A DNA stretch of 64,000 bases from IMGVR_UViG_3300020186_000013:62001-126000; one strand, 5' to 3'; numbered from the stretch's first letter, positions 1,190 to 64,000 are shown. Numbers and translations are program-made. The notes: generated from the letters alone by a model not told the origin.

Positions 1190-1205
1190 TAGAAACCGGA
1201 TTCTA
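1190..1205 (+). repeat. Dispersed 16-bp quasi-palindrome, copy 1 (TAGAAACCGGATTCTA)
   Basis: Intergenic; matches the consensus TAGAAACYRGMWTCTA. Confidence 0.85.
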
Positions 1206-1213
1206 TGTCGAAC

Positions 1214-1720
1214 TTAAGCCGGCAGCGTTTCGTCTTCGTCCTTCTCGCGGAGTTCGAGCACCCGCTTTATGGCGTCTATGTGGTCGGTTTGCTCGACGCT
1301 GCGACTACCGGCGTCCGGGAAAGCCGCCTCCCTAACAGAGAGTTCTTCCCGAAGTTCCGGGGTGGTTATCAGCTTGTACACACGGATCAACGTGTTGTCG
1401 AACTCCTCCTCTTCTTCTTCCTCGGGGTTCTCACCGAATTGCTCCGTTGCTTCGTAGCGGAGCGTATCCCAGTTGACGCCCTGCTCAGCGTCGTGGTTAC
1501 GGTTCGCCTCCCGCAGCACCTCCATGGCCTGCTCGTCGGTCAGACCGGCGTAAATGCTGTGCACGTCCCTGACGTCCCACGTGATGGCGATTTTATCTTT
1601 CCAGTAGTCCTGAAGGAGTGCCAGGACTGCCTTATTGATCGCCTTCTTGGTCTTGAGCGGCTTCGCGGTCAGCTTCGCTGCGACCAGCTCGGCCATCTTC
1701 TCCAATTGGTGGCTGTACAT
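1214..1720 (-). CDS. Hypothetical protein
   Basis: 168 aa, SD GGAGAG, contains a poly-Glu stretch. Confidence 0.75.
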   Translation of the reverse strand: MYSHQLEKMAELVAAKLTAKPLKTKKAINKAVLALLQDYWKDKIAITWDVRDVHSIYAGLTDEQAMEVLREANRNHDAEQGVNWDTLRYEATEQFGENPEEEEEEEFDNTLIRVYKLITTPELREELSVREAAFPDAGSRSVEQTDHIDAIKRVLELREKDEDETLPA

Positions 1721-2018
1721 CGTCTCTCCGTTGGATGTAGTTGGCCGTCAGCCAGACGACCTCCGCTTCCTTCGCCACGCCCTCGCGGTCGAACGTGTGT
1801 GTCAGGCAGACCCGGTACTTCTCGTCGCCCGTGGCGTCAGCCAGGTGGCTGAAGTCCACGTAGAACCGACCGGCGTTCGGGCCGTCCTCCACCGTATTGA
1901 TGATGGACGCCCGCCGCCGGCTGGCGGCAAAGTCCGGTCCAAACGCCTTCTCCCATGGGAAGTTGTCGTCGTGGATTGCCCGGACCTTGCCGCCTGGTGA
2001 GAACTTCAGCCGGACCAT
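1632..2018 (-). CDS. Conserved small protein accompanying the DUF1257/DUF2997/AAA module
   Basis: Pattern GKVRAIHDD...RRAS...GRFYVDF...F.REG.A..AE..WL resembles the small gene that accompanies this module in planctomycete mobile elements (recalled, not searched). Confidence 0.55.
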   Translation of the reverse strand: MVRLKFSPGGKVRAIHDDNFPWEKAFGPDFAASRRRASIINTVEDGPNAGRFYVDFSHLADATGDEKYRVCLTHTFDREGVAKEAEVVWLTANYIQRRDDVQPPIGEDGRAGRSEADREAAQDQEGDQ

Positions 2019-2020
2019 GG

Positions 2021-3454: not shown

Positions 3455-3499
3455 GCACCCTTGGCCATCCTAGCTCAGTAGTCGGTTACACGCCGACCG

Positions 3500-5185
3500 T
3501 CACAGCAACTTGCGGACCTTACGCTTGGCCCGCACGCCCACGGGGAGGTGGCCCGTCGATTCCGGTGCCGCCTCCTTGTTCTTCCGATAGATCTTGCCCG
3601 TCTCCGCGTCGAGCACGCGACCGTCCGCCCAGTCGCGGAGACGCTCGATCTGATCCGCCACCCGCACGCTCGACGGGATGACGATCTCGCTGGCCTCGAC
3701 CAGGGTGAGGTTGAGGTTGTCGGCCTTGCGACAGCACCCCTCGATCTCGACGCCGGCCCAACCCTTGTCGTCCGGGAGGGTCTGTTCCTCTAGCCCGTAC
3801 TTCTGCATGCAGATGTCCCAGATCTTCGCCTTCTGTTCCTTGCCCGGCAGGCCGACGTACCAGATGGCGTCGACGCGACCTTCACGGGTCAAGGCCATGT
3901 GCATCTTCGACATGTCATTGGCGGTCATGACGACGAGGACGTCGTCATGATCCCTGTGCGTGTCGAGGTACTCCATGAGTTGCTGCTTCAGGGCCTTGTC
4001 GACCGAGTGGCCATCCGACTCCTCGCCTCCCACCTGCTCGTTCACCTCGTCGATGTACGCGACCAGGTCGTGCATCGCCGTCAACTGGCTGAACAGCCTG
4101 CGGGTATTGGCCTCGGACTCCCCCACCCACTTGCTCTTCTGGTTGGAGAGGTTCATGCCGTACGTCTTCCGCTGCACGGCGTTGCCCAGGGCTTTCGCCA
4201 GGAGCGTCTTGCCCGTACCCGGAGGGCCGATGAGCAGCACCGCCCCCATCTTCGACCGCTTCTTGCGGCTCTCGGGTTGCATGATCTTCATCAAGAAGTC
4301 CTTGCAGGCGTCGTTGCCCCCGATGTCGTCCCACAGCGGCCAGTCCCGCTTCGGCCCGTCAGGCTTCTGCGGATCGACGGGCACCTTCATGTCCCAACGC
4401 TTAAGCAGCCCGTTGGCGTTCAAGAGCTGGTTTTTGATCTCCTCCACGATCTCCGTCTTGACCTTGCTGCTGCGGGTGAGGCTGCGGCCGTACGCACCCC
4501 CAGCCTGGAGCCGGGTCATGCCCGTGGACGCCTTGGCCAGAACGGACGCCTCCTCGTCGCTCAACTCGACGGGCTCGCCGTCGAGTTCCAACTCGTTCAA
4601 GATCGGCAGGAAGTCCTCGGCCTTGGGGAGTTCGTGCTTGATAATACTGAACAAGGGCATCCACTCGTTGGGGAGGGTGGTGCCCGGCGGGCAAAGAAAG
4701 ACGAGTGACTTGCACTGGCTCTTGCCGACCCGGACGAACTCCTCCACCAGGTGGAGGAAGATCATCTTGACTTCCGGGTTGGGGCTGAACAACGGCTCCC
4801 ACAGCATGTGGGCGTTCTTCATCAGGAGGACGGCCATCGGGTCGTCGTCCTGCTTGACCTTCTTCAGGAGGTACTTCACCGCCGCCAGGGCACTAGCACT
4901 GCCGCCGCCCCCGCTCTTCGGCGTCGACGCCGTGGTCGGAGCCAGGTGGGACGCGGGCGACTCTTCGTCGCCGGGCTGGGGCTTCGTCTCGTCCACCTCC
5001 ATCCCTTCCGCCGCGTTCCAGGTCATCAGTGACCAACCCTGGAACCGGCAGCTCTCGCTGATATCGACGGCCGCGTCCTCCCGCTCATCCGACAGCAACA
5101 GGATGCCGGCCTGCCCGGAACAGACGCACTCGTTGAAGTCCCGCCGCAGCGGGTTGGTCGACTTCTTCTTCTTGTCCGTGCTCAT
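3500..5185 (-). CDS. AAA+ ATPase, Ycf46-like
   Basis: WDDIGG, Walker A GPPGTGKT, SKWVGESE, Walker B YIDE, sensor TAN, SRH LTREGRVD, and a degenerate N-terminal ATPase-like domain. Confidence 0.85.
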   Translation of the reverse strand: MSTDKKKKSTNPLRRDFNECVCSGQAGILLLSDEREDAAVDISESCRFQGWSLMTWNAAEGMEVDETKPQPGDEESPASHLAPTTASTPKSGGGGSASALAAVKYLLKKVKQDDDPMAVLLMKNAHMLWEPLFSPNPEVKMIFLHLVEEFVRVGKSQCKSLVFLCPPGTTLPNEWMPLFSIIKHELPKAEDFLPILNELELDGEPVELSDEEASVLAKASTGMTRLQAGGAYGRSLTRSSKVKTEIVEEIKNQLLNANGLLKRWDMKVPVDPQKPDGPKRDWPLWDDIGGNDACKDFLMKIMQPESRKKRSKMGAVLLIGPPGTGKTLLAKALGNAVQRKTYGMNLSNQKSKWVGESEANTRRLFSQLTAMHDLVAYIDEVNEQVGGEESDGHSVDKALKQQLMEYLDTHRDHDDVLVVMTANDMSKMHMALTREGRVDAIWYVGLPGKEQKAKIWDICMQKYGLEEQTLPDDKGWAGVEIEGCCRKADNLNLTLVEASEIVIPSSVRVADQIERLRDWADGRVLDAETGKIYRKNKEAAPESTGHLPVGVRAKRKVRKLL

Positions 5186-5382
5186 ACTTTTTCCTGGGGG
5201 TTCATTTGAGCGACCGTGTAGGCACGCTCGGGCTCTTGGCTCTCGTCCGTAGGAACTTCACTGTGGGTGGAGCCCGCCATGTGCTTGCGGATGTGGGCGG
5301 TGACGTTCTGGCACTCCTTGCCAGGGTAACCCTCGGGGGAGATGGTCACCTTGCCGCCTCGGTCGAATTTCATTCGGATCAC
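5182..5382 (-). CDS. DUF2997-family small protein
   Basis: IRMKFDRGGKVTISPEGYPGKECQNVT matches the G-x-V-x4-G-x-x-G-x-x-C pattern; lies between a DUF1257-like gene and the AAA gene. Confidence 0.65.
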   Translation of the reverse strand: MIRMKFDRGGKVTISPEGYPGKECQNVTAHIRKHMAGSTHSEVPTDESQEPERAYTVAQMNPQEKV

Positions 5383-5391
5383 GGTCTCTCC

Positions 5392-6045
5392 TCAATACTG
5401 GGGCGGGGCCGGGATGGCCTGGTTGAGCCCCGTGTTCGCGGTGTCTGCGACGCCCTCGTACGTCCCGTCGGCGAGCTTCTTGAAGTTGATGTCCCAGCCT
5501 GACTCCTGAGCCGCCAGTTTGGCGGACATCATCTGGTAGAACATCAGGTACTCTCCGTGTGCGGAGATGACCTTCTTGCTGCTCCGGTCCACTTCGGTCT
5601 TGCCGACGATGTCTTCGATCCCGTACCCGCCCTGATAGAAGTCGTGGGCCAGGGAGTACGTGATCTCGCCGGTCTTCTTGTCGACGTGTGGGACCAGCCC
5701 GATCTCGTAAGGGGCCGTCCCGTAGCTCTTCACCTTCGACTTGTCCTTCACGCGGAGGATGGCCACCGCGTTCTCGCCGACGTCCGCGAGGGTCATGCCC
5801 GTCGGCATCGGCCAGTCGCCGACCAGCCGCCCCGAGTGGTCGTCCTTCCAGGTGCGGTAGTGCATACCGCCCTTGGTGACCAGTTGCCCGTTGGCGTCCC
5901 GGACGTGGCCGTCCTCGCCGATCGTATGCCCCTTGGGGAGCACCAGCTCCAGGTTGTCCTGGCACTCTGCCGCCATCTTCGCTGCGGTGATGTTCCGCAG
6001 CTTCTGCTCGACCGCACCGGGTGCGTACTCCACAACGTGTGACAC
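5392..6045 (-). CDS. DUF1257 (Ycf35)-like protein
   Basis: N-terminal MSH, YEIGLV, and C-terminal helix followed by GW...ADG; gene order DUF1257-DUF2997-AAA. Confidence 0.5.
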   Translation of the reverse strand: MSHVVEYAPGAVEQKLRNITAAKMAAECQDNLELVLPKGHTIGEDGHVRDANGQLVTKGGMHYRTWKDDHSGRLVGDWPMPTGMTLADVGENAVAILRVKDKSKVKSYGTAPYEIGLVPHVDKKTGEITYSLAHDFYQGGYGIEDIVGKTEVDRSSKKVISAHGEYLMFYQMMSAKLAAQESGWDINFKKLADGTYEGVADTANTGLNQAIPAPPQY

Positions 6046-6059
6046 AGCCTACCTCCTAT

Positions 6060-6094
6060 AATGAAAGACGCCGCCCCTATTGTAGTGGCGGCGT
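6060..6094 (-). terminator. Probable intrinsic terminator
   Basis: Minus strand ACGCCGCC-N11-GGCGGCGT followed by CTTTCATT. Confidence 0.5.
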
Positions 6095-6116
6095 ACCTCT
6101 CATCCGATCTCAGTCT

Positions 6117-6542
6117 TCACTCTTCTTCGTCGTCATCTTCATCGTCTTCATCGTCTTCATCGTCGTCCCAGTCATCCTCGTCGTCATCAAAATCGAGATC
6201 GTCGTCCTCGTAGTCATCGTCCTCGTCACTGTCCTCGTCGCTGAAGTCGTCATCTTCCTCGTCGGTGTCGTCCACGGCCACGCATTCGTGCCGGGCAGCG
6301 ATGTCGTTAAGGAAGTCGTCGTCTTCGTCCACGTCGTGGAAGTCGTCCTCAACGGCCTGGGCGGACAGATCGTCCGCGATCCGCTGCCGCAGGAAGGCGT
6401 CCAGGTCAGCGAGTATCGCCGGCCTGGTCATGCTCTGCTCGCGGATAAACTCGACGAGAAGAAACCGGATCTCTTCATCGTCCCAGTCGATTTCAGCCGC
6501 CAGTGCGTCCACGGCGTTCAGTAGTTTGTCCACGTTAATCAT
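6117..6542 (-). CDS. Protein with an extremely acidic C-terminal tail
   Basis: The last ~50 aa are mostly Asp/Glu (DDTDEEDDDFSDEDSDEDDDYEDDD...). Confidence 0.75.
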   Translation of the reverse strand: MINVDKLLNAVDALAAEIDWDDEEIRFLLVEFIREQSMTRPAILADLDAFLRQRIADDLSAQAVEDDFHDVDEDDDFLNDIAARHECVAVDDTDEEDDDFSDEDSDEDDDYEDDDLDFDDDEDDWDDDEDDEDDEDDDEEE

Positions 6543-9550: not shown

Positions 9551-9595
9551 GTAAGATACCTCTCAGATAATATGACGCAGATCAGTGTTTAATTT
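9551..9595 (-). promoter_or_regulatory. Promoter-like element, copy 1
   Basis: Minus strand AAATTAAACACTGATCTGCGTCATATTATCTGAGAGGTATCTTAC, closely similar to the copy at 56439-56483. Confidence 0.6.
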
Positions 9596-9672: not shown

Positions 9673-9679
9673 GTGTGGC

Positions 9680-9695
9680 TAGATTCCAGTTTCTA
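9680..9695 (-). repeat. Dispersed 16-bp quasi-palindrome, copy 2 (TAGAAACTGGAATCTA)
   Basis: Begins with the TAG stop codon of 9693..10016. Confidence 0.85.
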
Positions 9696-10016
9696 GAAGG
9701 TCTTCTGGATCGTCCGGGCACCGCCGTCTTGGTACACGATCCTGACCTGCTGGGCGTTCAACATTTCCTTAAGCCGCCGCTTGCTGTCCACGTCCATGTT
9801 GGCCAGACTGGACTTAGCCGAGAGCAGTAGCTGGTTCCGTTCCCGTCCCTTGCCGCCGCACGTGCCACACCCTTGCTTGGGGACACGCAGCTGAGGATTC
9901 TGGAGGGCTGCCAGGAACGGAAAAGCGGCAACGAATTTGGCGTTCGCCGCCATACTTAGAAGCGTGCCGTCTTCGATGACAACTAGCTTGCGTTGTGGTT
10001 GTGGGGTCGGCGTCAT
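9693..10016 (-). CDS. Small CxxC protein, paralogue of 10499..10849
   Basis: GCGTCGG motif; C-terminal RIVYQDGGARTIQKTF. Confidence 0.75.
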   Translation of the reverse strand: MTPTPQPQRKLVVIEDGTLLSMAANAKFVAAFPFLAALQNPQLRVPKQGCGTCGGKGRERNQLLLSAKSSLANMDVDSKRRLKEMLNAQQVRIVYQDGGARTIQKTF

Positions 10017-10498: not shown

Positions 10499-10849
10499 CT
10501 ACATCGTCAGGGTCTGCACACGTCCTGTGTCATCCCTATAGTACAGCAAGATCGGAACCGGGCGGTAGCGACGTTTGGCCGTGATGAACGCCACCAAGCC
10601 CGCCCGCGTGGCCTCGGACGCCGCCGCAACGGCCCCGAGCTTCCACAGGAGTTCGTTCAGTTCGCCCTTACCCTCGCCGCAGCTGCCGCAGCCTGTGCCA
10701 CGCAGGGAGCCGTCCAGAGCCCGCTCGTAGACGCCGGCTCCCTCCACAGCCCACGACTCGATTCCAGGGACCTTGTAGAAGTCCGGGAACTTGAGGGCCT
10801 GGAGCAGGGTCAGACGGTCGAAGACGAAGGTCGTACGCGGCCGTCCCAC
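10499..10849 (-). CDS. Small CxxC protein, paralogue of 9693..10016
   Basis: GCGSCGEG motif; C-terminal LLYYRDDTGRVQTLTM. Confidence 0.7.
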   Translation of the reverse strand: MGRPRTTFVFDRLTLLQALKFPDFYKVPGIESWAVEGAGVYERALDGSLRGTGCGSCGEGKGELNELLWKLGAVAAASEATRAGLVAFITAKRRYRPVPILLYYRDDTGRVQTLTM

Positions 10850-12813
10850 GGGAACTCCTTGTTCTTGGGACCATGGGACACGCCACGAGGCGAGTGCCCG
10901 GAACTGTGCACGAACTTCTTCCCCTCGTTGAAATTCTTGATCTTGAACCCGCCCTGCCGAACCATCTCGCCAATAACTATGTCACCACCGTTGTGCCGCA
11001 GTCGCACATCAGGGATGCCGCACCGGCGGATGGCCTCGGTCGCGACGCACCAGAAGCCGCCAGCCACGAAGTCGACGACCGACCCGTTGGGGGCAGGTTG
11101 GTCGACGTGCTTCAGGCGGAAGTTGACGTGCCTGTACCAGTCGCCGCCCCGGAACCACAGGTCGGGGCGGTGGCCGTCCTTGGCGTAGTGGTTGAAGTCG
11201 TGCTGGAACTTCCACCCATACAGTCGCGAGCCGTGGGGGTGGTTGGCCACGATCGTCTCGGTCAGTTTCTCCAGCCACAGGGGGTCGACCACGAAGCTGT
11301 CGTCATCAAACCAGATGACGTGGCTAGTCTCGATCGGCGTCTGCTGGTCCCAGAACATTTCCCGCATCACCGGGTACTTCAGCTTGTTCACGGGGTTGAC
11401 GTAGACCCGCGTGATCGGCTGGTCCCGGACGTACTGAAGGGTCTCAGGGCAGCACTCGTTGCACGCGACCCGTAGGTCGATGCAGTTGGGCGGCACGTAC
11501 CGAAGGATGGAGTCGATGCACCGCTTGGCCAGTTCGGGATGATTGCCGTAACAGAGGACGCACACGGTGAACTTACCGTTGATGATCGGGTGGGACAGAA
11601 GGTTCGGTCGGTGGGGGGCCTTGGCGAAGATCTCAGGAGGCAACATCTTGTTCTGTATCGGCTGCGTCTTTGCCGCCTCGGCCGGCGGGCGGGTGAACTC
11701 CAAGGTGGACTCGGGCTGGCCGTTGACGTACAGCCCGACCTCGTTGCCATGGTCGTCGACCAATGGGTAGTTCGCCGGGACGATCACGGGCAGGCTGTAC
11801 TTGCCGCTGGGCTTTCCGATTGGTGGTAACACGCCATCCTCGTAGTAGGACATCACGGCCTCAACCACATGGTCGACACTGATCATATCAAGGCACAGCG
11901 GCACGGGCATGCTGCCCTGTGGCCGCACAGGTTCAGAGCACAGACGCTTCTGGGCGTTGCCGGGTAGCAGGTCTTCTTTGTCGATCGGCACGGTCAGCCG
12001 CTTCCAGCACCCCTTGTCCTTGCAGCAGTAGATCATGCCCAGGGTGTGCAGATATTTGTGGGGCACCTTCACGGGCGGGCACGCCGGCCCAAAGGCTGTT
12101 GGGTAGTAGTCGTTGACGTACCCCTCCCACCACGGAGCCTCCCGACCGCCACCGAGGACGACGCACGGCTTGTCGAAGCACGCCGCGATGTGCATGGCGG
12201 CGGTCACCCCGCACACCACCCCGTCGGCGTTGGCGATCAGCGAGAGTAGGTCCCTGACGTTCTCGGTCCGGCCCACGGCGTTGAGGGCTCCGGCCAGCGG
12301 AGGGTGGACGTGGTGTTGGTGGGTCGCCCCGGCCTGGACGAACTGGACGCCCTGATGGGCCAGCGTGTCGATGACCTGCTGGTAGCGGTCAACGTGCCAG
12401 TGTTTGGTGGTGATGTCGAGCTTGCCACCCGACAAAATGACCCAATACCGTCCTTTGACGAGAGGCTGCTTCTCGGTCTCGGCCAAGAACAGCTCGCCTT
12501 TGGGGGCCGTGACGGGTACGCGGATGCCGGTCTTCAGCTCGAAGTCGCGATGGAACCACGCCAGGAAGTGAACCTTCTCCCGGTTGTTCGCTTCCTGGAT
12601 GCCGTCCTTGTAGGACAGCTCGATGACCCGTTGGTTCTTGACCGTGAAGTCCAGGGGCACGACGCGGGAGTTGTTCCACCACACCGGCGTCCAGTGTGTG
12701 TCGACCATGAGCCGGTACTGGTTCGGGTACGCCAGCTGGATGTCCCGCACCAGGGCCGTCACGAGGACGGTGTCACCCAGTGCAAACTTGTGTCTTAGAA
12801 TCAGCGTTTGCAC
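10810..12813 (-). CDS. Bifunctional glycosyltransferase: GT9 (heptosyltransferase-like) + GT2 domain
   Basis: ALGDTV, TKHW...YQQVI, LLSLIANADGVVCGVTAAMHIAACFDKPCVVLGG (GT9). C-terminal VCVLCY...RCIDSI...WFDDD (GT-A). Start re-called to GTG at 12813 with SD GGAG. Confidence 0.8.
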   Translation of the reverse strand: MQTLILRHKFALGDTVLVTALVRDIQLAYPNQYRLMVDTHWTPVWWNNSRVVPLDFTVKNQRVIELSYKDGIQEANNREKVHFLAWFHRDFELKTGIRVPVTAPKGELFLAETEKQPLVKGRYWVILSGGKLDITTKHWHVDRYQQVIDTLAHQGVQFVQAGATHQHHVHPPLAGALNAVGRTENVRDLLSLIANADGVVCGVTAAMHIAACFDKPCVVLGGGREAPWWEGYVNDYYPTAFGPACPPVKVPHKYLHTLGMIYCCKDKGCWKRLTVPIDKEDLLPGNAQKRLCSEPVRPQGSMPVPLCLDMISVDHVVEAVMSYYEDGVLPPIGKPSGKYSLPVIVPANYPLVDDHGNEVGLYVNGQPESTLEFTRPPAEAAKTQPIQNKMLPPEIFAKAPHRPNLLSHPIINGKFTVCVLCYGNHPELAKRCIDSILRYVPPNCIDLRVACNECCPETLQYVRDQPITRVYVNPVNKLKYPVMREMFWDQQTPIETSHVIWFDDDSFVVDPLWLEKLTETIVANHPHGSRLYGWKFQHDFNHYAKDGHRPDLWFRGGDWYRHVNFRLKHVDQPAPNGSVVDFVAGGFWCVATEAIRRCGIPDVRLRHNGGDIVIGEMVRQGGFKIKNFNEGKKFVHSSGHSPRGVSHGPKNKEFPWDGRVRPSSSTV

Positions 12814-14317
12814 GCTTCTCCTCCAGTTTGCGTGCCGTCCGGCCTTCCGCCTGCCCCCAGCGGCGGAAGTGCTCGTACCCGCTGCCCACCTCACCCTTCT
12901 GGACACTGTAGAGCACGTCCAGGTGCTTCGTCAGATAGTAGTCTTCGTCGAACTCCTCCTGCGACACGTACCCGGAGACGGTAGGCACCAGGGCCATCGC
13001 CGACAGGTGGTCGCACGTCACGCCCCAGTCGAGCTTGGCGGCGTCCTTGAGTTGCCCGTAGAAGTGGGTGTCGTAGCACTCCTGCTCGGAGAACACGAAG
13101 TTGCGGACGACGCTGCTCCGCAGCAGGACGCAGCCGAAGCCATTGCCCGCCACCTTGACGACGCCCGTGCCGGGGGTCTTGATGATTACGTCCGGGCGGG
13201 ACACCCAGGCAACGAAGCCCTCGCGGTAGCGGTGGGCGTAGGCCCCGGACACGCTGGCGGTCTTCTCGTCCATGGCGTAGAAGAGCCGCAGCAGGGCGTC
13301 GTCCGGGGGGATGACGTCGTCCTCTAGCACCCAGGCGTAGTCCGTCGTCAGGTTGCGGGCGAACAGGTTGTAAATCTTGGCCATCGCCCGGTTGGTGGCC
13401 CGCAGTACGGCTTGATCCATCCGGTCGGCGTCCGCGAGGCCGGGCTCGCCGACTCGCTGGTTGATGTACCGGTAGTCGGCGTAGTCCGACTTCGCCAGCC
13501 AGCTCTGCACGGCGTAGGAGAACCCGCTGCTGTCGCACGTGCTGGTCGTATCGAGGATGACGAGCTTGACCTGGTCGTGGGGCCACGTCTGCCGTTCGAG
13601 GTACGTGCTCAGTTTGGCCCAGCAGTCGAACCGACCGGACATCGGGATGAACAGTGTCACCTTCTCCAGGGACAACGCGGCCCGGCGGAAGAAAGAGTGG
13701 TCGTTTCGCTTGTTCACGAGGCTACTCCCGTGCTTGCGGTAGCGGTACGCAGCCGCCATCTTCACGGCGTCGTACCCGGCCGCGACGATCCGCCGCCACA
13801 GGAGCCAATCCTCGTGGGCGTGGGGGAGTACGGGTATGGAGTACACATCCGCCACGCTGTACGCGATCTTGCGAACGACCGGGCCGCAGTGGATGCAGTT
13901 CTCCCGAGCCAGGTAGTCCGCCGTGGCCGTGTCGGGGAAGGAGGTCACGTCCGACTGATCGCCGAAGTGGGCGAGGTCGGAGTAGACGATGCCGACCTTG
14001 GGGTCGGCGAAGTACGGCAGGGCGTAGTCGATGTACGCCGGGGACAGTTTGTCGTCGGCGTCGACGCAGACGACGAGGTCGCCCCGAGCCGTCTTGATTC
14101 CCGCCAGCCGCGTCGGCAGGGGGTGGTTGTACCTGACCTTCAGGTAGCGGACGGACGGATACCGCGTGACGACCTTGACGGTCTTGTCCGTGGAGTCGTC
14201 GTCGACGACGATGATCTCGTCGGGCGGGCGTATTTGGTGGAAGATGCTGTCAAGGCATTCCCCCAGGTAGTGACCGTAGTTGTGGCACGGAACTACAACG
14301 CTGACGCGATGGCTCAT
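12773..14317 (-). CDS. GT2 glycosyltransferase with a second GT-A-like domain
   Basis: VSVVVPCHNYGHYLGECLDSI, VVDDDSTD, VDADD, HEDW; a second LEDDV motif; C-terminal FDEDYYL...HF...G..EGR motif. Confidence 0.88.
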   Translation of the reverse strand: MSHRVSVVVPCHNYGHYLGECLDSIFHQIRPPDEIIVVDDDSTDKTVKVVTRYPSVRYLKVRYNHPLPTRLAGIKTARGDLVVCVDADDKLSPAYIDYALPYFADPKVGIVYSDLAHFGDQSDVTSFPDTATADYLARENCIHCGPVVRKIAYSVADVYSIPVLPHAHEDWLLWRRIVAAGYDAVKMAAAYRYRKHGSSLVNKRNDHSFFRRAALSLEKVTLFIPMSGRFDCWAKLSTYLERQTWPHDQVKLVILDTTSTCDSSGFSYAVQSWLAKSDYADYRYINQRVGEPGLADADRMDQAVLRATNRAMAKIYNLFARNLTTDYAWVLEDDVIPPDDALLRLFYAMDEKTASVSGAYAHRYREGFVAWVSRPDVIIKTPGTGVVKVAGNGFGCVLLRSSVVRNFVFSEQECYDTHFYGQLKDAAKLDWGVTCDHLSAMALVPTVSGYVSQEEFDEDYYLTKHLDVLYSVQKGEVGSGYEHFRRWGQAEGRTARKLEEKRANADSKTQVCTG

Positions 14318-14320
14318 GGT

Positions 14321-18446: not shown

Positions 18447-18473
18447 CCTTGACTCTTTGTTGTCGTCCTGCCA

Positions 18474-19445: not shown

Positions 19446-19454
19446 GATGACTCC

Positions 19455-19470
19455 TAGAAACTGGCTTTTA
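19455..19470 (+). repeat. Dispersed 16-bp quasi-palindrome, copy 3 (TAGAAACTGGCTTTTA)
   Basis: Lies in the 22-bp gap between genes and overlaps the stop codon of 19468..20289. Confidence 0.85.
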
Positions 19471-24535: not shown

Positions 24536-24544
24536 GAGTGGGCC

Positions 24545-24946: not shown

Positions 24947-24956
24947 GGTCTTCTCC

Positions 24957-25913: not shown

Positions 25914-25931
25914 CCGTGCCTCCTAGTCGAA

Positions 25932-27758: not shown

Positions 27759-27774
27759 CCTTGACCCCCCTCTT

Positions 27775-28440: not shown

Positions 28441-28452
28441 GGAATCCCTTCC

Positions 28453-30015: not shown

Positions 30016-30018
30016 GGT

Positions 30019-30034
30019 TAGAAGCCAGTTTCTA
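30019..30034 (-). repeat. Dispersed 16-bp quasi-palindrome, copy 4 (TAGAAACTGGCTTCTA)
   Basis: Ends 3 bp upstream of the ATG at 30015; identical to copies 5 and 6. Confidence 0.9.
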
Positions 30035-30796: not shown

Positions 30797-30867
30797 AACT
30801 AACCTCCTTGTAACTGCGATTACCATCCAGACACACATGCCTGCCGGTAGGTTCCAGAGACCGTATT

Positions 30868-39494: not shown

Positions 39495-40284
39495 GTTCAG
39501 CTCTCCACGCTTGGTCCATGCGGTACGCCACGGCCATCAGCAACGCACTGAGCCGCAGTGGCAGCTCTTTCTGATTCTTCCACAGATTGCGGAAGGTCAG
39601 GTAAGGTTGCTCGGCCGTGATGCCGAACAGGGCGTTCAGGTTGGGCTCGCCGATGTTAGTAAGACTCGCCAGCAGGTCCGCTAGGTCCGCCTGGGGGCGG
39701 TTCCGGACGACGACGTCCCAGGCCATTCCGGGGCTCGTTGTCGTCAGGCGGACCGAGTATCCGGACTGGCCGAGTGGGACCGCGTCCGACAGGCCGTCCG
39801 TCAGGGCGAAAGGTAGAAACTGGCTTCTAGATGTCGGTGTGATCTCCTGCACCTGTACGGACGTCGGGCCGGCAACGCGGACCTCGACGGTCGTTTCGAT
39901 CTGCCCAGTGGTATCCGGAGCGGTCGGTACGCCCTGAACGTAGAGTGTAGTCGGTACACCTTGGAGCTGCATCACAACCGGCATAAATGCGGCGGCGGGC
40001 ACGAGGGCGGCGTCGGTCAAGGAGTACGTCACGCGGGGGTCGAGTTGGAACACGTAGTCGACCAGTGGCGTGGCGTGGATCAGGCGAACGAACTGCCGGC
40101 ACCGGTAGTTCACCATGTGGCGATCGGGCTTGGAGCCGAATAAGAGGGACCGAACCACGGTCAAGTACCCAGGGACGGCCTTCAGGGGCACGAAGTCCGT
40201 GGGCGTAGCTTCCTCGGCGAGGTACGACGCCGAGCCGTTGAAAGATGCCTGGTTGGCCAGCATCGTGCGTGCGTGGTTGTACAC
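39481..40284 (-). CDS. Putative baseplate/tail protein
   Basis: ORF 39481..40428; start re-called to GTG (VYNHARTML) next to the stop of the upstream gene. Confidence 0.6.
   Translation of the reverse strand: MYNHARTMLANQASFNGSASYLAEEATPTDFVPLKAVPGYLTVVRSLLFGSKPDRHMVNYRCRQFVRLIHATPLVDYVFQLDPRVTYSLTDAALVPAAAFMPVVMQLQGVPTTLYVQGVPTAPDTTGQIETTVEVRVAGPTSVQVQEITPTSRSQFLPFALTDGLSDAVPLGQSGYSVRLTTTSPGMAWDVVVRNRPQADLADLLASLTNIGEPNLNALFGITAEQPYLTFRNLWKNQKELPLRLSALLMAVAYRMDQAWRAERGTN
39814..39829 (+). repeat. Dispersed 16-bp quasi-palindrome, copy 5 (TAGAAACTGGCTTCTA), inside a CDS
   Basis: Encoded within S-R-S-Q-F-L using the AT-rich codons TCT AGA ... TTT CTA. Confidence 0.9.
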
Positions 40285-49874: not shown

Positions 49875-49890
49875 TAGAAACTGGCTTCTA
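49875..49890 (+). repeat. Dispersed 16-bp quasi-palindrome, copy 6 (TAGAAACTGGCTTCTA)
   Basis: Lies between the tube stop codon and the hairpin. Confidence 0.9.
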
Positions 49891-56438: not shown

Positions 56439-56483
56439 GTAAGATTTCTCTCAGGTAATATGACCCGTTTCGGTCGTTTATTT
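56439..56483 (-). promoter_or_regulatory. Promoter-like element, copy 2
   Basis: Minus strand AAATAAACGACCGAAACGGGTCATATTACCTGAGAGAAATCTTAC. Confidence 0.6.
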
Positions 56484-57954: not shown

Positions 57955-58386
57955 TTATCGACCCTGGGCAGCCATCGCGGCGTAGCTGTCGGCCTCGTGG
58001 GCCTTCAACGCCAGGACGCTGTCGTAGATCAGGGGGTCCTGCATGACGATCGAAGCGGCCTGCTTCATCGACATGAGTTCGTCCTGCTCGGCCGCAGCCT
58101 TGACGGAGCCGAAGCCCGCCTGGGCCAGGACCTGGTCAAGAGCCGAGTTTGCGGCGGCGAACGGGTCGTAGGCGTCTTCCGCCTGCTTCACCGCCGCCTC
58201 CTCCTCGACGAGCCGCAGCTTGCCGGCGAGGTCGAGGAGATCGGACGCCTGCTTCTGCGTCCGGGGCACGTGGCCAAGCTGGGCCAGCTTGTGGAAGAAG
58301 ACCCGCTGGGCAACCCCGTCGAACACGTTCTGGTAGGCCGTCTGAGGGTCAGGAAGAGCGGCCTGCTGATTGGCGGTCCCTGCCAA
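57955..58386 (-). CDS. Ala/Gln-rich internal head protein candidate
   Basis: 143 aa, TTG start with SD AAGGAGG; five K-x-A motifs. Confidence 0.65.
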   Translation of the reverse strand: MAGTANQQAALPDPQTAYQNVFDGVAQRVFFHKLAQLGHVPRTQKQASDLLDLAGKLRLVEEEAAVKQAEDAYDPFAAANSALDQVLAQAGFGSVKAAAEQDELMSMKQAASIVMQDPLIYDSVLALKAHEADSYAAMAAQGR

Positions 58387-58407: not shown

Positions 58408-58423
58408 AAGAATCTGGTTTCTA
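58408..58423 (-). repeat. Dispersed 16-bp quasi-palindrome, copy 7 (TAGAAACCAGATTCTT)
   Basis: Intergenic. Confidence 0.8.
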
Positions 58424-58450: not shown

Positions 58451-58813
58451 TCAGCCGGTGATCACCGCCGGTCCACCAGTCGTTGCCGGCAGAGCAGGGG
58501 TCGGGTTGTTCACGTTGTCGAAGACGGAGGCGACGCCGCCGTTCTTCGAGTAGTCGTTGCCCCGGTTCCAGTACGCCGGTGCGATCGGGGTCGCGTCGGT
58601 GTGGCTGAAGCCGGACTTTTGGGCCTCGTTGACGTCGGCCGCACTGTACGGGTCGTACACCGTCGTCAGCTGGTGGTTGTTGACCCCGGTGTTGGCCGGC
58701 GGGGCGGGCTTCGGCGTCTGGGTGAAGTTGTCGGGGTTGCTGCCGGTCACCGTCCCAGGGGACTGGTACGTGTCCGCACTCAGCGATCCGAACTTGTTGG
58801 CGTTGGCACTCAC
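58451..58813 (-). CDS. Small Asn/Pro/Thr-rich head-associated protein
   Basis: Start re-called to GTG at 58813 (SD AAGGAGG in a 6-bp hairpin). Confidence 0.65.
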   Translation of the reverse strand: MSANANKFGSLSADTYQSPGTVTGSNPDNFTQTPKPAPPANTGVNNHQLTTVYDPYSAADVNEAQKSGFSHTDATPIAPAYWNRGNDYSKNGGVASVFDNVNNPTPALPATTGGPAVITG

Positions 58814-58894
58814 GACTGTTCCTCCTTGAACAGGGGTCGGTTTGTGAAGCAAGGCCGGGTCCCATGACCCGGCCGACGCGACCGTCAAGGTCGA

Positions 58895-60456: not shown

Positions 60457-60526
60457 GTGTCAAATCCTCCGTGAAAAATCTAGTGGCCGCGAGGGCCACT
60501 AGGTGGAAATCGTTTCCGAACACTTA

Positions 60527-60973: not shown

Positions 60974-61028
60974 TAGCGAATCTCCTCCATGAGAAAAGGC
61001 GGTAGGTTACTGTCGGTTCAAACGCGGA

Positions 61029-62510
61029 TCAACGGCCGCTGCGACGCGACCGCTGGATGACTTCGGTGATGTAGTCCTTCATGCCGTCGCGGTGGTTACC
61101 CTGCTTGGCAGCTGCCTGCTTGGGCCGGTTCCGACGGTCATGACCCATCTTCGGTTCGCCGCCGCCATCGCCCATGGCGTCGCCGCCAGGAGGTGCGTCG
61201 CCGCCCGGAGGGGGAGCACCGCCGCCCGCATCGGCACCGCCGCCACCGCCACCGCCCTCTTGGGCCATAGCCTGTTGCAGTTCTTCCGGCGTGACGCCGA
61301 GCTGGTCGAGGAGGTCAGCCAGGTGCTGGGCCTCGTCACCGCCGCCTCCCTCGCCACCGCCCGGAGGGGCACCGACGTCGCCGCCACCGCCGCCCGCATC
61401 GGCACCGCCGCCGAGAGCGGCCATCATGCCGCCCGCGTCGCCGCCACCGCCAGGAGGGGGAGCACCGCCACCCATGGGGTCACCGCCGGGAGCACCGCCA
61501 CCACCGCCGGCCATCATGGCCGGGTCGATCGGAGGCATCTCGCCGCCACCGCCCATCGGGTCACCTTCGGCCTGCTTCTGAGCCTGGAAGAAGTTGTCGA
61601 GGAAGTGGGCCACACGAACGGCGTCGTCGTTCGCGGTCTTGATGACGCCGGTGAGGGCCTCGTGGACCATCTGGTCGGCGGCTTGCTTGTCGAAGTTGTT
61701 GGTCGCCAAGCCGGCCAGTTCCCAGCCAGCCTGCATCTGGAGGCTGGCATCGGCGTCGCCGGCCTGCTTCCGTTGCCCGCCGCCGTTGTTGGCCGCGTGC
61801 TGGCGGGCGTCAGCCGCCGTCTTGGAATTGCCGAGTTGCTCGGACATCTGGCTGATCTGGGCACAGATCAGGTTGCCGAGGCCCTGCATGTCCGCCGCGA
61901 TCTTGTGCAGCGGGGTATCTGAGGCGTACTTGTGGCCGTCGAGGGACTCGTTGTCCGTCCGGGCCGGGTGCAAGGAACCGGGGTCCTTCTTGCCTGCCTT
62001 GACACCCTTGGTCTCGATGTCGGGCGTCTGCCCGGTCGGCTGAGGGTTCAGCGGGCTATCGACGTGATCGTCGGCAGCGGAGCCGGCCGTCTGGACGGCA
62101 CCCTCGGCCTTCTTGAGGCGGGCCTTCTTGTCGCGACCCTTCTTCTCGTCCGACTCGTCGGAGTCCGACGACTCGGCCTTGAGGTCCTGCTCGACCTTCT
62201 TCATGAAGGGGTTCTCGGCCTTCTTGGAGAACTGGCCCAGGAACGCCGACGCCGTCTTGGCTTTCGCCTCGGCGGTGCTGTCGACGCTGATGGCACCCTG
62301 CTCTTCCTTGACGTCCTTTTCGTTCTCCTTGGAACGAGCACCAGTCTGTGCGACTTCGGTGCGGTCGTCGACGTTTTTGACGGGGTGCTCGGTCTCACCG
62401 CCGATGGAGCCCGCTTCGGTGTGGGCCTCCTCGGCTGACTTGGTGTGACCGACGCGGCTGAGAAACGATTCGATGGTGGCCATCGAACTCTGTGCGGATT
62501 TGGTTGCCAT
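61029..62510 (-). CDS. Scaffold/internal head protein with Gly/Pro-rich low-complexity regions
   Basis: Start re-called to MATKSA (SD AAGGAG); about 14 K-x-A motifs; GGGAPPPGG repeats. Confidence 0.65.
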   Translation of the reverse strand: MATKSAQSSMATIESFLSRVGHTKSAEEAHTEAGSIGGETEHPVKNVDDRTEVAQTGARSKENEKDVKEEQGAISVDSTAEAKAKTASAFLGQFSKKAENPFMKKVEQDLKAESSDSDESDEKKGRDKKARLKKAEGAVQTAGSAADDHVDSPLNPQPTGQTPDIETKGVKAGKKDPGSLHPARTDNESLDGHKYASDTPLHKIAADMQGLGNLICAQISQMSEQLGNSKTAADARQHAANNGGGQRKQAGDADASLQMQAGWELAGLATNNFDKQAADQMVHEALTGVIKTANDDAVRVAHFLDNFFQAQKQAEGDPMGGGGEMPPIDPAMMAGGGGGAPGGDPMGGGAPPPGGGGDAGGMMAALGGGADAGGGGGDVGAPPGGGEGGGGDEAQHLADLLDQLGVTPEELQQAMAQEGGGGGGGADAGGGAPPPGGDAPPGGDAMGDGGGEPKMGHDRRNRPKQAAAKQGNHRDGMKDYITEVIQRSRRSGR

Positions 62511-62595
62511 AGCTGGCAGCACTCCTTTGCTTCGGTTACCTGTGTTGGTCCGTATCGCCAGTCCCTGAGCGGACCTCAGCCACCGTTAGGAGGCG

Positions 62596-64000
62596 TCAGA
62601 TCACCTGATTCTGGACGATACCCAGTCTCGCTGTCAACATGAACTCGTCGTCGAACGCCGCGATGCGTTGCAACGCCGCGACCTTGTAAAGGGCGTACGC
62701 CCTCGCGAGTTCTTCCGCCTCGTGCTTGTCCGAGGCGGACTTCTCGCTCCAGATTCCAGTTTCTAGAACTGGCATCCGGTAGGACCGGATCGAGGCGAGC
62801 TGGCAGCGGTGGTCGACCGCCGCCTTCTCCAAGGACAGCCCGTCCCGGATTTGCAACACCCAGCGGCGAAGCTGGGCCGATGCGGTTTTGGTGGAGAGAG
62901 CAAACGGATTGTTCGTCAGCCGCCGCTCCAAGGACCCGTCAGTAATCATTCGCCCGTAAACGCCACGCAACGCCGCCGCTGCGGGGGCCACGAACTCGGC
63001 CTTCTTGGTGAGCTTCGCGAATTCGCGGAGCGGCAGGATGACCTTCTCGACCGCGAGTGCAGCCAGGGCCTCGGCACACTTCTGCGTGCCGGGTTCGCCC
63101 AGCATCGCAGGATCGACTTTTCCTTGCAACCGGTCGTCGAAGGCGAGCTTGTAGATGTCGTGTACCTGGCGGCGGTCCATGGTCCGCTCCAAGTGGTCGA
63201 GCCCTGCGGCCAGCTTCACCTGTTGGTCAACGTCCGTGGGGTTCATCCGGGAGAAGTAGTCGTCGGCCATCATGACAGCCAGGGGAGCAGAAACGCCCAG
63301 GTCCTCGGCCACCTTGCTGCTGTACGCCCCGTAGGTGCCGTCCCAGCGATCGGACGCAGCCTTGGTGAGGTAGTCCGCCCGATTAGCGTACGCGATGCGG
63401 TCCGCCGGACGGAAGACGTTACTCATGTCGAACCACGTCGGGCGGGGGTTGTCGACGTGCAGCTGGTGGACGTCGTTGCCGACCTTCACCAGGCGGCTCA
63501 GGTTGTCCTTGCACCCGCCGGCCTTGCAGCTGGCTTCTTTGCAGTAGTCGTCGCGGGTCCTGGCCTGATTGCCGCACCACGAGCACGTGTCGTACGGGAC
63601 GCGGCACGCCATCGACACGGCGATGTCCTCGCCACGTGCCAGCTTCTCCATCTCCTTGTCGGCGACCAGCCCGCCGTTGCGTTCCGCCGCCGACTTCTCC
63701 TTGTTCAGGAACGCCAGCAACTCGACGCGACGCATGGTCTCGTTGTACGCGGACTTCTTGATGATCCCGTACGACGCCTGGGGGTCCTTGTTCTTGTGGT
63801 TCCGATACCACCGGGCGAACTTCTCGAACGTGTTGTGGTACTCGCGGCAGGTGGCCTCCTTGAAGCCGTCGCCGTTGCGGTTGGGGCCGTACGCCTCAGT
63901 CGCCCCGTGGGACAAGACGTGGACAGGCTCCTCGTCCTTCGCCGCCTTGATGTTGTCGATGACATCGAGAAAGGCGTGGGACGCCCGCTTGACGAAGTCC
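62596..64000 (-). CDS. Prohead (capsid maturation) protease, 5' truncated
   Basis: Frame is open to the window edge (DFVKRASHAF...). Motifs NRNGDGF, YRNH.NKD, VSMAC.V..D.CSWCG are typical of large-myovirus prohead proteases. Confidence 0.7.
   Translation of the reverse strand, partial: DFVKRASHAFLDVIDNIKAAKDEEPVHVLSHGATEAYGPNRNGDGFKEATCREYHNTFEKFARWYRNHKNKDPQASYGIIKKSAYNETMRRVELLAFLNKEKSAAERNGGLVADKEMEKLARGEDIAVSMACRVPYDTCSWCGNQARTRDDYCKEASCKAGGCKDNLSRLVKVGNDVHQLHVDNPRPTWFDMSNVFRPADRIAYANRADYLTKAASDRWDGTYGAYSSKVAEDLGVSAPLAVMMADDYFSRMNPTDVDQQVKLAAGLDHLERTMDRRQVHDIYKLAFDDRLQGKVDPAMLGEPGTQKCAEALAALAVEKVILPLREFAKLTKKAEFVAPAAAALRGVYGRMITDGSLERRLTNNPFALSTKTASAQLRRWVLQIRDGLSLEKAAVDHRCQLASIRSYRMPVLETGIWSEKSASDKHEAEELARAYALYKVAALQRIAAFDDEFMLTARLGIVQNQVI
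62750..62765 (-). repeat. Dispersed 16-bp quasi-palindrome, copy 8 (TAGAAACTGGAATCTG), inside a CDS
   Basis: Encoded within L-E-T-G-I-W using CTA GAA ACT GGA codons. Confidence 0.75.

Follow-up and report, generated by a model that had tools for sequence, protein, structure and literature searches.

Why should a single 16-bp near-palindrome recur every few kilobases along a phage genome, and do the copies serve individual genes or the DNA molecule as a whole? The question was raised by a first-pass annotation of a 64,000-bp stretch of DNA (hereafter the window), which comprises positions 62001-126000 of the 208,145-bp uncultivated jumbo phage contig IMGVR_UViG_3300020186_000013 (= JGI Ga0163153_10000043). 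That annotation listed eight copies, roughly 10 kb apart, and inferred binding sites for a dimeric protein acting on a physical scale, with parS/matS-like organisation or segregation, packaging or ejection marks, programmed nicks and stoperator-like roadblocks as options.

Copy number and spacing of the motif

The eight copies listed in the first-pass annotation are all real. The consensus TAGAAACYRGMWTCTA is matched exactly by five of them and with one mismatch by the other three (Table 1), whereas the number expected in shuffled sequence is 0.00 for exact matches and 0.85 with up to three mismatches. The only other match with up to three mismatches is background, its position weight matrix (PWM) score being well below the minimum of 16.7 for true sites. 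The spacings of 8490, 9775, 10564, 9795, 10061, 8533 and 4342 bp, the identity of copies 4-6, the mixed orientation and the location of all genes on the minus strand are likewise confirmed, as are the two copies inside ORFs and the two providing stop codons. Within the window alone, the evenness of placement corresponds to a CV of 0.24 (P = 5.5e-4 against uniform placement).

Table 1. Window coordinates of the motif copies and of other features. Gene coordinates are given within the context column.
Feature	Position	Strand	Sequence	Mismatches	PWM score	Context
Copy 1	1190..1205	+	TAGAAACCGGATTCTA	0	28.4	Intergenic, 13 nt after the stop of gene 1214-1720 and about 75 nt before the start of gene 880-1116
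Copy 2	9680..9695	-	TAGAAACTGGAATCTA	0		TAG is the stop codon of upstream gene 9693-10016; canonical hairpin plus T-run terminator follows at 9672-9650
Copy 3	19455..19470	+	TAGAAACTGGCTTTTA	1		On the coding strand, TAA is the stop of upstream gene 19468-20289; GGAG and GTG of gene 18474-19445 follow directly; position conserved in relatives L079 and L080
Copy 4	30019..30034	-	TAGAAACTGGCTTCTA	0		Intergenic, just after a GC-rich hairpin and 3 nt before the ATG of gene 28453-30015, which has no Shine-Dalgarno (SD) sequence
Copy 5	39814..39829	+	TAGAAACTGGCTTCTA	0		Inside the 262-aa gene 39481-40266 at about codon 150, read as TCT AGA AGC CAG TTT CTA; motif at the same codon position in relatives L079, L083 and L102
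Copy 6	49875..49890	+	TAGAAACTGGCTTCTA	0		Intergenic, 3 nt after the stop of gene 49894-50370, followed by a GC-rich hairpin, then SD and ATG of gene 47056-49803
Copy 7	58408..58423	-	TAGAAACCAGATTCTT	1	23.1	Intergenic between genes 58451-58888 and 57955-58386
Copy 8	62750..62765	-	TAGAAACTGGAATCTG	1	25.3	Inside the 439-aa ORF 62596-63915, read as CTA GAA ACT GGA ATC TGG
Background match	30855				12.4	Not counted as a site
Sigma70-like protein gene	37025-37789					
Tubulin-family GTPase gene	L038 9765-11180	-				Coordinates on L038, not window

To determine whether the series continues outside the window, the remainder of the genome was recovered to about 98% of its length. In total, 24 copies were found, with PWM scores of at least 16.7 (mostly above 21) against a best background score of 13.2 and no intermediates. 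The 20 consecutive spacings from 35.6 to 198.5 kb range from 4342 to 10567 bp (mean 8145, CV 0.228), and none of 200,000 random placements reached a CV of 0.36 or less. The series crosses structural, RNA-polymerase and nucleotide-metabolism modules. However, one interval of 16,493 bp, the replication module, contains no site, indicating that the limit on spacing is not absolute. The placement is even, not periodic at 10 kb, and no lattice period was found.

Sites strongly prefer tiny intergenic gaps: 17-18 of 24 are intergenic (six of eight in the window), in a genome with about 5% non-coding DNA, and nine supply the stop codon of the upstream gene. Six lie inside genes. The view of the first-pass annotation that position along the DNA matters more than gene context is thus too strong. 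Sites are nevertheless found within ORFs where no gap is at hand.

Architecture and conservation of the site

Only the 16 bp are conserved, together with a preference for C before and G after, whereas the wider flanks are not. Including these flanking bases, the element reads C-TAGAAAC-YR-GMWTCTA-G, that is, two inverted heptamers two bases apart, always with a pyrimidine-purine step at the centre. The site is clearly asymmetric, as exactly one half carries A at position 6 in 23 of 24 copies. Its orientation is divided 15:9, although the genome is transcribed in one direction.

Related phages with about 50% protein identity carry co-varying versions (TAAAWTCYRGAWTTTA) at the same positions, and the half-sites change together between lineages (TAGAA..TTCTA, TAAAA..TTTTA, CAAAA..TTTTG and TAAAT..ATTTA). 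In phages with only 45-60% protein identity, position is conserved after the roughly 275-aa gene, at codon ~150 of the 262-aa gene and, in 13 phages, about 2.3 kb upstream of RNAP beta. At the second of these positions the encoded amino acids differ while the motif stays (SRSQFL, SKNRLL, PKVVY, QKTFF). At another intragenic site, encoding AKIWNLT, the codons AAA ATC TGG AAT are invariant in 10 of 10 relatives, while all nine flanking conserved degenerate codons vary, pointing to constraint at the nucleotide level.

Spacing is also kept when gene content changes. Compared with relative L079, our phage has four extra genes between two conserved sites, and its middle site sits two genes earlier, at a different gene boundary, giving intervals of 9795 and 10564 bp. 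At the L079 position, the split would be about 12.0/8.3 kb. In both phages the middle site lies near the midpoint. The evenness statistics refer to our phage only; in the 21-23 kb loci compared from relatives, clear sites lie 3.6-11.6 kb apart.

An assembly or adapter artefact is excluded, as the same sites occur in four independent JGI assemblies and are built into reading frames and stop codons, and diverged versions occur in ENA, Logan and TARA assemblies. Selfish or recombinational palindromes, serving as joints for cassette exchange, could be suggested by the four-gene insertion, which ends exactly at site 30019, and by relative L125, in which the motif directly follows the baseplate-J gene. 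Selfish spread, however, does not give even spacing, positional conservation over about 50% protein divergence or frozen synonymous sites, and this explanation is already largely refuted.

Possible transcription and RNA-level signals

The preference for gene boundaries, the frequent overlap with stop codons and the SD abutting the motif in many phages would also suit a gene-expression signal. The phage encodes its own multisubunit RNA polymerase, consisting of beta (1038 aa) and a split beta' (582 + 1285 aa), as well as a sigma70-like protein, an alpha-CTD-like protein and a sigma-region-4/GerE-like protein. The sites could be a promoter core, or the binding site of an activator or antiterminator for this polymerase, breaking a 200-kb one-directional genome into units of about 8 kb. 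Even spacing would then reflect limited processivity or the need to reload a factor. Consistent with this, the motif is the only over-represented intergenic 7-mer besides the SD sequence in 112 kb, and most sites lie just upstream of a gene start. Several downstream genes lack an SD and start 2-5 nt after the motif (window 30015, contig 27786, and relatives L079, L080 and L125), which would fit leaderless transcripts. In addition, two sites follow a terminator-like hairpin and precede a start codon.

On the other hand, the asymmetric site points both ways, no further conserved bases lie at promoter distances, and the distance to the next start codon ranges from 3 to about 285 nt. At four or five sites the motif sits before the hairpin, twice before a canonical terminator with a T-run (contig 11293 and window 9680), and six sites are intragenic. 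Relatives manage without any signal at the same gene junctions, using translational coupling instead. Furthermore, at least eight hairpin-bearing gaps in the window have no motif, so it cannot be the general restart signal, nor is the motif specifically coupled to terminators. Operon-driven signals have no known reason to reach a CV of 0.23. We consider a transcription signal the main alternative, but a doubtful one.

An RNA-level role, as a processing site, translational enhancer or protein-binding hairpin in the polycistronic mRNA, is very unlikely. In its favour, the motif is a rare AU-rich patch at gene junctions in a 63% GC transcriptome, its U-rich arm replaces the SD before several start codons, and the phage encodes a CsrA homologue. 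However, the core hairpin is worth only 0 to -2.0 kcal/mol and does not form in context, its loop differs with orientation, and GGA, the CsrA target, is on the mRNA strand in only about 3 of 15 sites. A search of the window against Rfam gave no match, and intragenic sites lie far from any start codon.

Possible partition systems and strand breakage

The phage was next examined for genes of recognised partition and DNA-processing systems. No ParB (ParBc) hit was obtained among the 61 window proteins, among 20 further proteins or in precomputed Pfam annotations for 19-59 kb and 138-196 kb. Neither were ParA, MatP-like, KorB, SMC-loader, topoisomerase, nickase or HNH genes recognised in the parts scanned. 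Since most proteins have no Pfam hit and about 20 kb fell outside these scans, this does not prove absence. Sixteen-bp palindromes are the usual format of parS and similar sites, and the length and dyad symmetry of the motif fit this format, but its sequence is not known to be related to parS or OB.

A tubulin-family GTPase is encoded (Pfam Tubulin, E = 9.7e-11), whose best solved relative is the plasmid-partition protein RepX/TubZ (4ei7, E = 1.8e-10), ahead of FtsZ at about 5e-7. The sites might be centromere-like attachment points for this TubZ-like system, or for an unrecognised ParB/KorB-like clamp, that position, segregate or condense the phage DNA. Yet the neighbours of the tubulin gene are a glycosyltransferase and proteins of 104-265 aa with no DNA-binding hit, and no TubR-like adaptor was found. 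The motif is dispersed, with the nearest copy about 2 kb away, while known tubC and parS centromeres are clustered next to their operon, not spread every 8 kb. In other jumbo phages, tubulin (PhuZ) works without a known DNA centromere. This reading is regarded as improbable.

Alternatively, a site-specific nickase or a sequence-specific topoisomerase would act on one strand at each site, as in the nicked genomes of T5, tf or phiKMV, releasing torsional stress during transcription, packaging or ejection. Even, genome-wide spacing fits a topological purpose, a kinkable YR step lies at the centre, and the asymmetry at positions 6 and 11 (23 of 24 sites) would make an enzyme with symmetric arms act on one strand only, avoiding double-strand cuts. 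Against this, the orientation is mixed, whereas nicks in the known nicked phages lie on one strand. Furthermore, relatives have perfectly palindromic versions such as TAAATTCCGGAATTTA and CAAAAAACGTTTTTTG, which on this logic would be cut on both strands. Inferred from sequence alone and without a recognised enzyme, nicking is unlikely.

A putative chromosome-scale binding site

Taken together, our tentatively favoured reading is that the element is an operator-like, cis-acting DNA site for one phage-encoded sequence-specific protein, either an HTH dimer or a single chain with two HTH units, serving a distance-limited process on the scale of the chromosome. In this view, the sites are not signals for individual genes but are spread so that almost no part of the 208-kb chromosome lies more than about 5.3 kb from one, as would be demanded by anchoring, loading or barrier sites that cut the unidirectionally transcribed chromosome into domains of at most about 10.6 kb. 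Selection would keep the largest gap small and place each site in the nearest harmless spot, a tiny intergenic gap if there is one and otherwise a tolerant stretch of a gene. The copies themselves, their evenness, context, conservation and co-variation, and the nucleotide-level constraint are demonstrated by our analysis, whereas binding by a protein, the identity of that protein and what it does once bound are inferred.

Two candidate binders, neither of them linked to the motif by any test, are a stand-alone 75-aa LuxR/NarL/GerE-type HTH protein and a 93-aa protein with two HTH-like halves, the latter of which would suit the systematic asymmetry of the site. The family of the former includes NarL, whose dimers bind 7-2-7 inverted heptamers with outer TA, as in our 16-bp site. 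Those operators, however, sit at fixed promoter distances of particular genes.

The interpretation in the first-pass annotation is thus partly supported: the sites behave as would DNA-level protein-binding sites whose spacing is itself under selection, but no ParB, ParA or MatP-like gene was found in the parts scanned, and nicks and packaging or ejection marks remain hypothetical. Its stoperator alternative fails, as it had itself anticipated. Like our motif, stoperators of Cluster A mycobacteriophages are short sites dispersed in many copies, often at gene junctions, and they are bound by a phage protein. They are, however, asymmetric 13-mers co-oriented with transcription that serve an immunity repressor of temperate phages (PMC4351075), whereas here the sites are dyad-symmetric and of mixed orientation, and no repressor or integrase was seen.

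Dispersed dyad repeats as such have a precedent in Cluster O mycobacteriophages, a descriptive resemblance and not one of homology. In Corndog, a 17-bp repeat (5'-TGTTCGGNNNCCGAACA) is present throughout the genome in 34 copies, many intergenic and about a third inside genes, and its asymmetric centre is not oriented with transcription; its authors predict binding by a dimeric protein in a process other than transcription initiation, with function unknown (PMC4351075). The Corndog repeats are denser towards one genome end and not reported as evenly spaced, their sequence is unrelated with a 7-3-7 layout, and host and phage type differ, Corndog being a siphovirus without its own RNA polymerase. 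KorB-OB of plasmid RK2, ParB-parS and the dispersed centromere sites of prophage N15 likewise comprise palindromic 13-16-bp sites scattered over a replicon in promoter-proximal, distal and intragenic contexts. These serve a protein acting at a distance by sliding or spreading over kilobases, which offers a rationale for spacing, but their sequences are not known to be related to the motif and none has been described as evenly spaced over 200 kb. The site-specific nicks of T5, tf and phiKMV also involve short sequences that recur along a phage genome and work at the level of the DNA molecule, but their consensus sequences are unrelated and asymmetric and they are not known to be evenly spaced.

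A more speculative possibility, which we regard as unlikely although not excluded, is that the sites form a chromosome-wide ruler. A phage protein bound at them would serve a process with finite reach along DNA, such as loading a sliding or loop-extruding factor, anchoring to the TubZ-like cytoskeleton or forming topological domain barriers, with selection enforcing a maximum gap of about 10.56 kb. If true, this would be the first case of a virus genome whose cis-sites are selected for even spacing, shared by a large uncultivated clade of jumbo phages with their own RNA polymerase. The three longest of the 20 consecutive intervals are 10,564, 10,567 and 10,564 bp, a coincidence with a chance of about 2.5e-5 under smooth spacing distributions, as computed after the fact.

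Distribution of the sites along the phage chromosome

The window was searched with the pattern TAGAAACYRGMWTCTA. Five exact copies and three copies with one mismatch were found (see table), while shuffled sequence gave 0.00 exact matches and 0.85 matches with up to three mismatches. An alignment of the eight copies with 60-nt flanks showed that only the 16 bp are shared. Judged by the GC3 signature, all plausible genes of the window are on the minus strand. The first-pass annotation, which had described eight copies of a 16-bp quasi-palindrome in mixed orientation on DNA with all genes on the minus strand, is therefore correct in what it observed.

Exact-pattern scans of the viral collection placed the window at bases 62001-126000 of the 208,145-bp contig IMGVR_UViG_3300020186_000013 (JGI Ga0163153_10000043). 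Nearly identical contigs occur in three other samples. By walking along this contig and a 99.98%-identical one, all of the sequence was read except 4977-6293 and 205187-208145. This also revealed copies between 139 and 190 kb, which are CCAG variants not covered by the exact patterns. In total, 24 sites were identified. A position weight matrix (PWM) built from the copies separates them cleanly: true sites score 16.7-29.2, mostly above 21, whereas the best other 16-mer scores 13.2. Of the sequence records read (L numbers), L283-L287 were scanned by mismatch count only.

From 35.6 to 198.5 kb, the 20 consecutive spacings have a mean of 8145 bp and a CV of 0.228, while the lowest CV among 200,000 uniform placements was 0.36. 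The spacing is even, not periodic, as a periodogram gave nothing significant: the best period, 2015 bp with R = 0.60, is not significant after multiple testing. The three longest intervals, each measured within one record, are 10,564, 10,567 and 10,564 bp, which looks like a sharp upper limit. The chance of this under smooth distributions is about 2.5e-5, computed after the fact, and no mechanism known to us measures 10.5 kb to within 3 bp. One interval of 16,493 bp breaks the rule, has no site and is the only long stretch of this kind. It is the replication module and holds a family-A (PolA-type) polymerase fused to a UDG-like domain, primase-like and helicase-like proteins, and an SbcC/SbcD-like pair. 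A non-coding origin within this interval was considered but rejected, as the 680-bp stretch in question is coding.

Positions of the sites and of other features. Positions are on the contig, in the window (w) or in sequence records (L numbers)
Feature	Contig position	Window or record position	Strand	Distance to next site (bp)	Remarks
Site	1349				
Site	11293			16493	
Site	27786	L288 11814-11837			Gene start 2-5 nt after the motif, no Shine-Dalgarno sequence
Site	35672			7537	
Site	43209			6428	
Site	49637			6343	
Site	55980			7210	
Site, window copy 1	63190	w 1190	+	8490	Exact; in a gap of 64-97 nt
Site, window copy 2	71680	w 9680	-	9775	Exact; supplies the stop codon of the upstream gene
Site, window copy 3	81455	w 19455	+	10564	One mismatch; supplies the stop codon of the upstream gene
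Site, window copy 4	92019	w 30019	-	9795	Exact; in a gap of 64-97 nt
Site, window copy 5	101814	w 39814	+	10061	Exact; inside an ORF
Site, window copy 6	111875	w 49875	+	8533	Exact; in a gap of 64-97 nt
Site, window copy 7	120408	w 58408	-	4342	One mismatch; in a gap of 64-97 nt
Site, window copy 8	124750	w 62750	-	7659	One mismatch; inside an ORF
Site	132409			6030	
Site	138439			9891	
Site	148330			10567	
Site	~158897			7443	
Site	~166340			6369	
Site	~172709			9169	
Site	~181825			10564	
Site	192389			6132	
Site	198521				
Three longest intervals		w 19455-30019; L284 8076-18643; L287 3333-13897			10,564, 10,567 and 10,564 bp
Site-free interval	11293-27786	L289, L288			Replication module
Gene start without Shine-Dalgarno sequence		w 30013-30015			2-5 nt after the motif
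The same in relatives		L079 21451-21473; L080 21540-21560; L125 11702-11724			2-4 nt after the motif
Baseplate-J-like protein		w 34402-36054			
Sigma70-like protein		w 37025-37789			Inside the baseplate module
RNA polymerase beta and the two beta' pieces	134.5-145.8 kb	L283 12548-15664, 16065-17813, 19919 onwards			1038 aa; 582 and 1285 aa
Alpha-CTD-like protein		L161 10839-11180			113 aa
Tubulin-family GTPase	about 200.4-201.8 kb	L038 9765-11180	-		
CsrA homologue		L284 12205-12399	- (of the locus)		64 aa
Sugar and modification enzymes		w 10810-15235 and 33400-34383; L284-L287			
Second element, TCATATTAYCTGAGAGRWATCTTAC		w 9551-9574 and 56439-56462	-		
9-mer TAAGTTCGA		w 1172, 1208, 8106, 9634	-		
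ORF of about 261 aa		w 30101-30886			Equally long ORF on the opposite strand, 30104-30802

Genomic context

Seventeen or 18 of the 24 sites are intergenic, although only about 5% of the DNA is (5552 of 112,257 nt in gaps). By a binomial estimate, the chance of this is below 1e-12. In nine sites, the TAG or TAA of the motif is the stop codon of the upstream gene, and six sites are inside genes. The base before the motif is mostly C and the base after it mostly G. The next start codon follows at anything from 3 to about 285 nt.

Two genes of this phage start 3 and 5 nt after the motif without a Shine-Dalgarno sequence, as does one gene each in the relatives L079, L080 and L125, whereas most other genes have a strong one. 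The U-rich arm of the motif may stand in for it, or the transcripts may be leaderless. Apart from the Shine-Dalgarno sequence, the motif is the only over-represented intergenic 7-mer in 112 kb. These observations, together with the polymerase and sigma genes, favor the main alternative reading, a transcription signal of the phage's own polymerase, which nevertheless appears unlikely given the mixed orientation, the sites placed in front of terminators, the intragenic sites, dispensability in relatives and the evenness.

GC-rich hairpins lie next to about seven sites, two before the motif and five after it, two of the latter being canonical terminators. As more hairpin-bearing gaps in the window lack the motif than have it, a specific coupling between motif and terminator hairpins was rejected.

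Site architecture

The site consists of two inverted heptamers two bases apart, TAGAAAC-YR-GMWTCTA, with a central step that is always CG, TG or CA. In this phage it is systematically asymmetric: in 23 of 24 copies exactly one half has A at position 6, while the other half has G or T. The orientation of this asymmetry is 15:9 along a genome in which nearly every gene points the same way, the CsrA homologue being one of the few on the opposite strand. An array of stoperators fails on this orientation test. Programmed nicks, as in T5, or swivels would explain both the asymmetry and the spacing, but this reading is considered unlikely, as it sits badly with the perfect palindromes of relatives.

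As RNA, the core folds at 0 to -2.0 kcal/mol and does not form in context, and Rfam finds nothing in the window. Binding of CsrA was rejected because GGA is rarely on the mRNA strand. RNA-level roles are thus largely excluded, as are selfish, recombinational or artefactual origins.

Sites in related phages

The baseplate-J-like protein has more than 500 homologues at about 50% identity on contigs of 180-240 kb. Complete contigs of this size in the clade include Ga0233415_10000004, Ga0114978_10000006, Ga0209702_10000089, Ga0207952_1000023 and ERZ27257313 k141_2268, and an 88%-identical relative (protein P0127) is represented by a 26.5-kb Logan contig. Loci of relatives around this gene and around the RNA polymerase beta gene show the same kind of element with co-varying arms: TAAAAACCGGATTTTG and CAAAAACCGGCTTTTG in L079, TAAAAAACGGTTTCTA in L080, CAAAAAACGTTTTTTG in L102, TAAAAAGTACTTTTTA in L125, and TAAAWTCYRGAWTTTA in many freshwater and marine members with 43-54% GC. 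Some members, such as L082, show none. A pattern scan for the relative's variant AAAAACCGGNTTTTG gave no useful result, and a loose pattern scan of all relatives was too noisy in low-GC genomes for reliable statistics on context or spacing. In the loci examined, clear sites of relatives lie about 3.6-11.6 kb apart.

Positions are conserved after the roughly 275-aa gene (our site at window 19455; L079 and L080), at codon ~150 of the 262-aa gene (our site at window 39814; L079, L083 and L102), and about 2.3 kb upstream of RNA polymerase beta in 13 phages, where the motif supplies the stop codon and abuts the Shine-Dalgarno sequence. In the 262-aa gene, the encoded residues nevertheless differ: SRSQFL, SKNRLL, PKVVY and QKTFF. 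The protein next to site 158897 was too poorly conserved to serve as an anchor for relatives.

At an intragenic site in a conserved protein (…EDEFGAKIWNLTELARYCNHQ…), the codons AAA ATC TGG AAT are identical in ten relatives, while every one of nine flanking conserved degenerate codons varies. By a Fisher estimate, 0 of 3 against 9 of 9 gives P of about 0.005, and the constraint is therefore on the nucleotides. Other relatives have plain translational coupling at the junction where ours has the site at window 19455, so the element is not needed there for expression.

Between the two conserved sites at window 39814 and 19455, our phage has four extra genes. Its middle site (window 30019) sits before the 520-aa gene and splits the distance 9795/10564, whereas L079 has its middle site two genes further on and splits 8344/7266. 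At the L079 position, the split in our phage would be about 12.0/8.3 kb.

Among isolated phages, no match to the baseplate protein was found, and RNA polymerase beta retrieved only distant phages (Salmonella phage Arash, Vibrio D69, 32% identity). The 50 kb of Arash examined has genes on both strands and no such motif. Relatives are binned into MAGs of unrelated taxa (Nannocystaceae, Nanopelagicales, Aquaspirillum, Gemmataceae; records L372-L377), and the bins give no reliable host.

Gene content and candidate binding proteins

The phage encodes its own multisubunit RNA polymerase, with beta' in two pieces; in relatives the beta gene is often fused to beta' or carries inteins. It also encodes a sigma70-like protein, whose L125 orthologue, inspected by eye, shows sigma regions 2-4, an alpha-CTD-like protein, a 75-aa stand-alone LuxR/NarL/GerE-type HTH, and a 93-aa protein with two HTH-like halves. 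Pfam and PHROG scans of nearly all window proteins gave few hits and, inside the window, no DNA-binding candidate except the sigma-like protein.

The best solved relative of the phage tubulin is plasmid-partition TubZ/RepX (E = 1.8e-10), to which it is closer than to FtsZ; no TubR-like neighbor was recognized. A TubZ- or ParB-type centromere array has only this gene in its favor and is very doubtful. No ParB, ParA, nickase or topoisomerase was recognized, although most proteins have no family hit.

Interpretation of the dispersed sites

Dyad symmetry and a kinkable center, co-variation of both arms between lineages, indifference to orientation, a negligible RNA fold and frozen synonymous sites argue for a DNA site bound by a phage protein. 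The extreme evenness, its extension across functional modules, the use of coding sequence where no gap is available, and the shift of the middle site with gene content argue that distance along the DNA is selected. The strong preference for gene junctions is what one expects if a 16-bp AT-rich palindrome is costly inside genes, and does not by itself indicate an expression signal. We therefore tentatively favor operator-like sites serving a distance-limited, chromosome-scale process, such as domain anchors, barriers or loading sites. While the sites, their spacing, context and conservation, and the constraint on the nucleotides were observed directly in the sequences, binding by a phage protein, its identity and the process served are inferred. 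The proposal of the first-pass annotation, that a dimeric protein binds these sites and acts on a physical scale, is thus partly supported.

Dispersed palindromic repeats of unknown function occur in a few phage groups. The nearest described case is the 17-bp dyad repeat of Cluster O mycobacteriophages, which has more than 30 copies, intergenic and intragenic, with orientation unrelated to transcription, and is predicted to bind a dimeric protein in an unknown process (PMC4351075). Those repeats are denser at one genome end and are not reported as evenly spaced. ParB-parS and KorB-OB share the logic of action at a distance, but no such protein was found among the proteins scanned. Compared with these dispersed dyad repeats, the new and unexplained property is genome-wide even spacing, which the loci of relatives suggest is conserved in a large uncultivated clade. 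To our knowledge no such spacing has been described, and literature searches found none.

Here the spacing itself seems to be the selected trait, as it is kept when gene content changes and sites are pushed into coding sequence with frozen synonymous positions. With a defined 16-mer, 24 known positions and a short list of candidate binders, it becomes directly testable what such repeats do and whether phage chromosomes have a higher-order organization. The clade includes hundreds of environmental jumbo phages that carry their own multisubunit RNA polymerase, a sigma-like factor and a tubulin. Should the element turn out to be an unusual promoter or regulator of the phage polymerase, it would still define the main cis-signal of an unstudied transcription system.

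Other sequence features

The second conserved element, TCATATTAYCTGAGAGRWATCTTAC, occurs twice, each time preceded by CTAAAT(T)AAAC about 13 nt upstream and located in the leader of a gene, and looks like a promoter. The 9-mer TAAGTTCGA recurs on the coding strand near motif copies 1 and 2, and there are 8 matches to the 10-mer TTAAGTTCGA with up to 1 mismatch, against 1.1 expected. The ORF of about 261 aa and the ORF opposite to it show the same codon-position GC pattern, so that either strand may be the coding one. Many sugar and modification enzymes are encoded: GT2, GT9, a GT-D-like protein, GT1, sulfotransferase-like, radical-SAM, methyltransferases and a UDP-glucose dehydrogenase. A matrixin-type metallopeptidase with a peptidoglycan-binding domain sits next to the baseplate genes.
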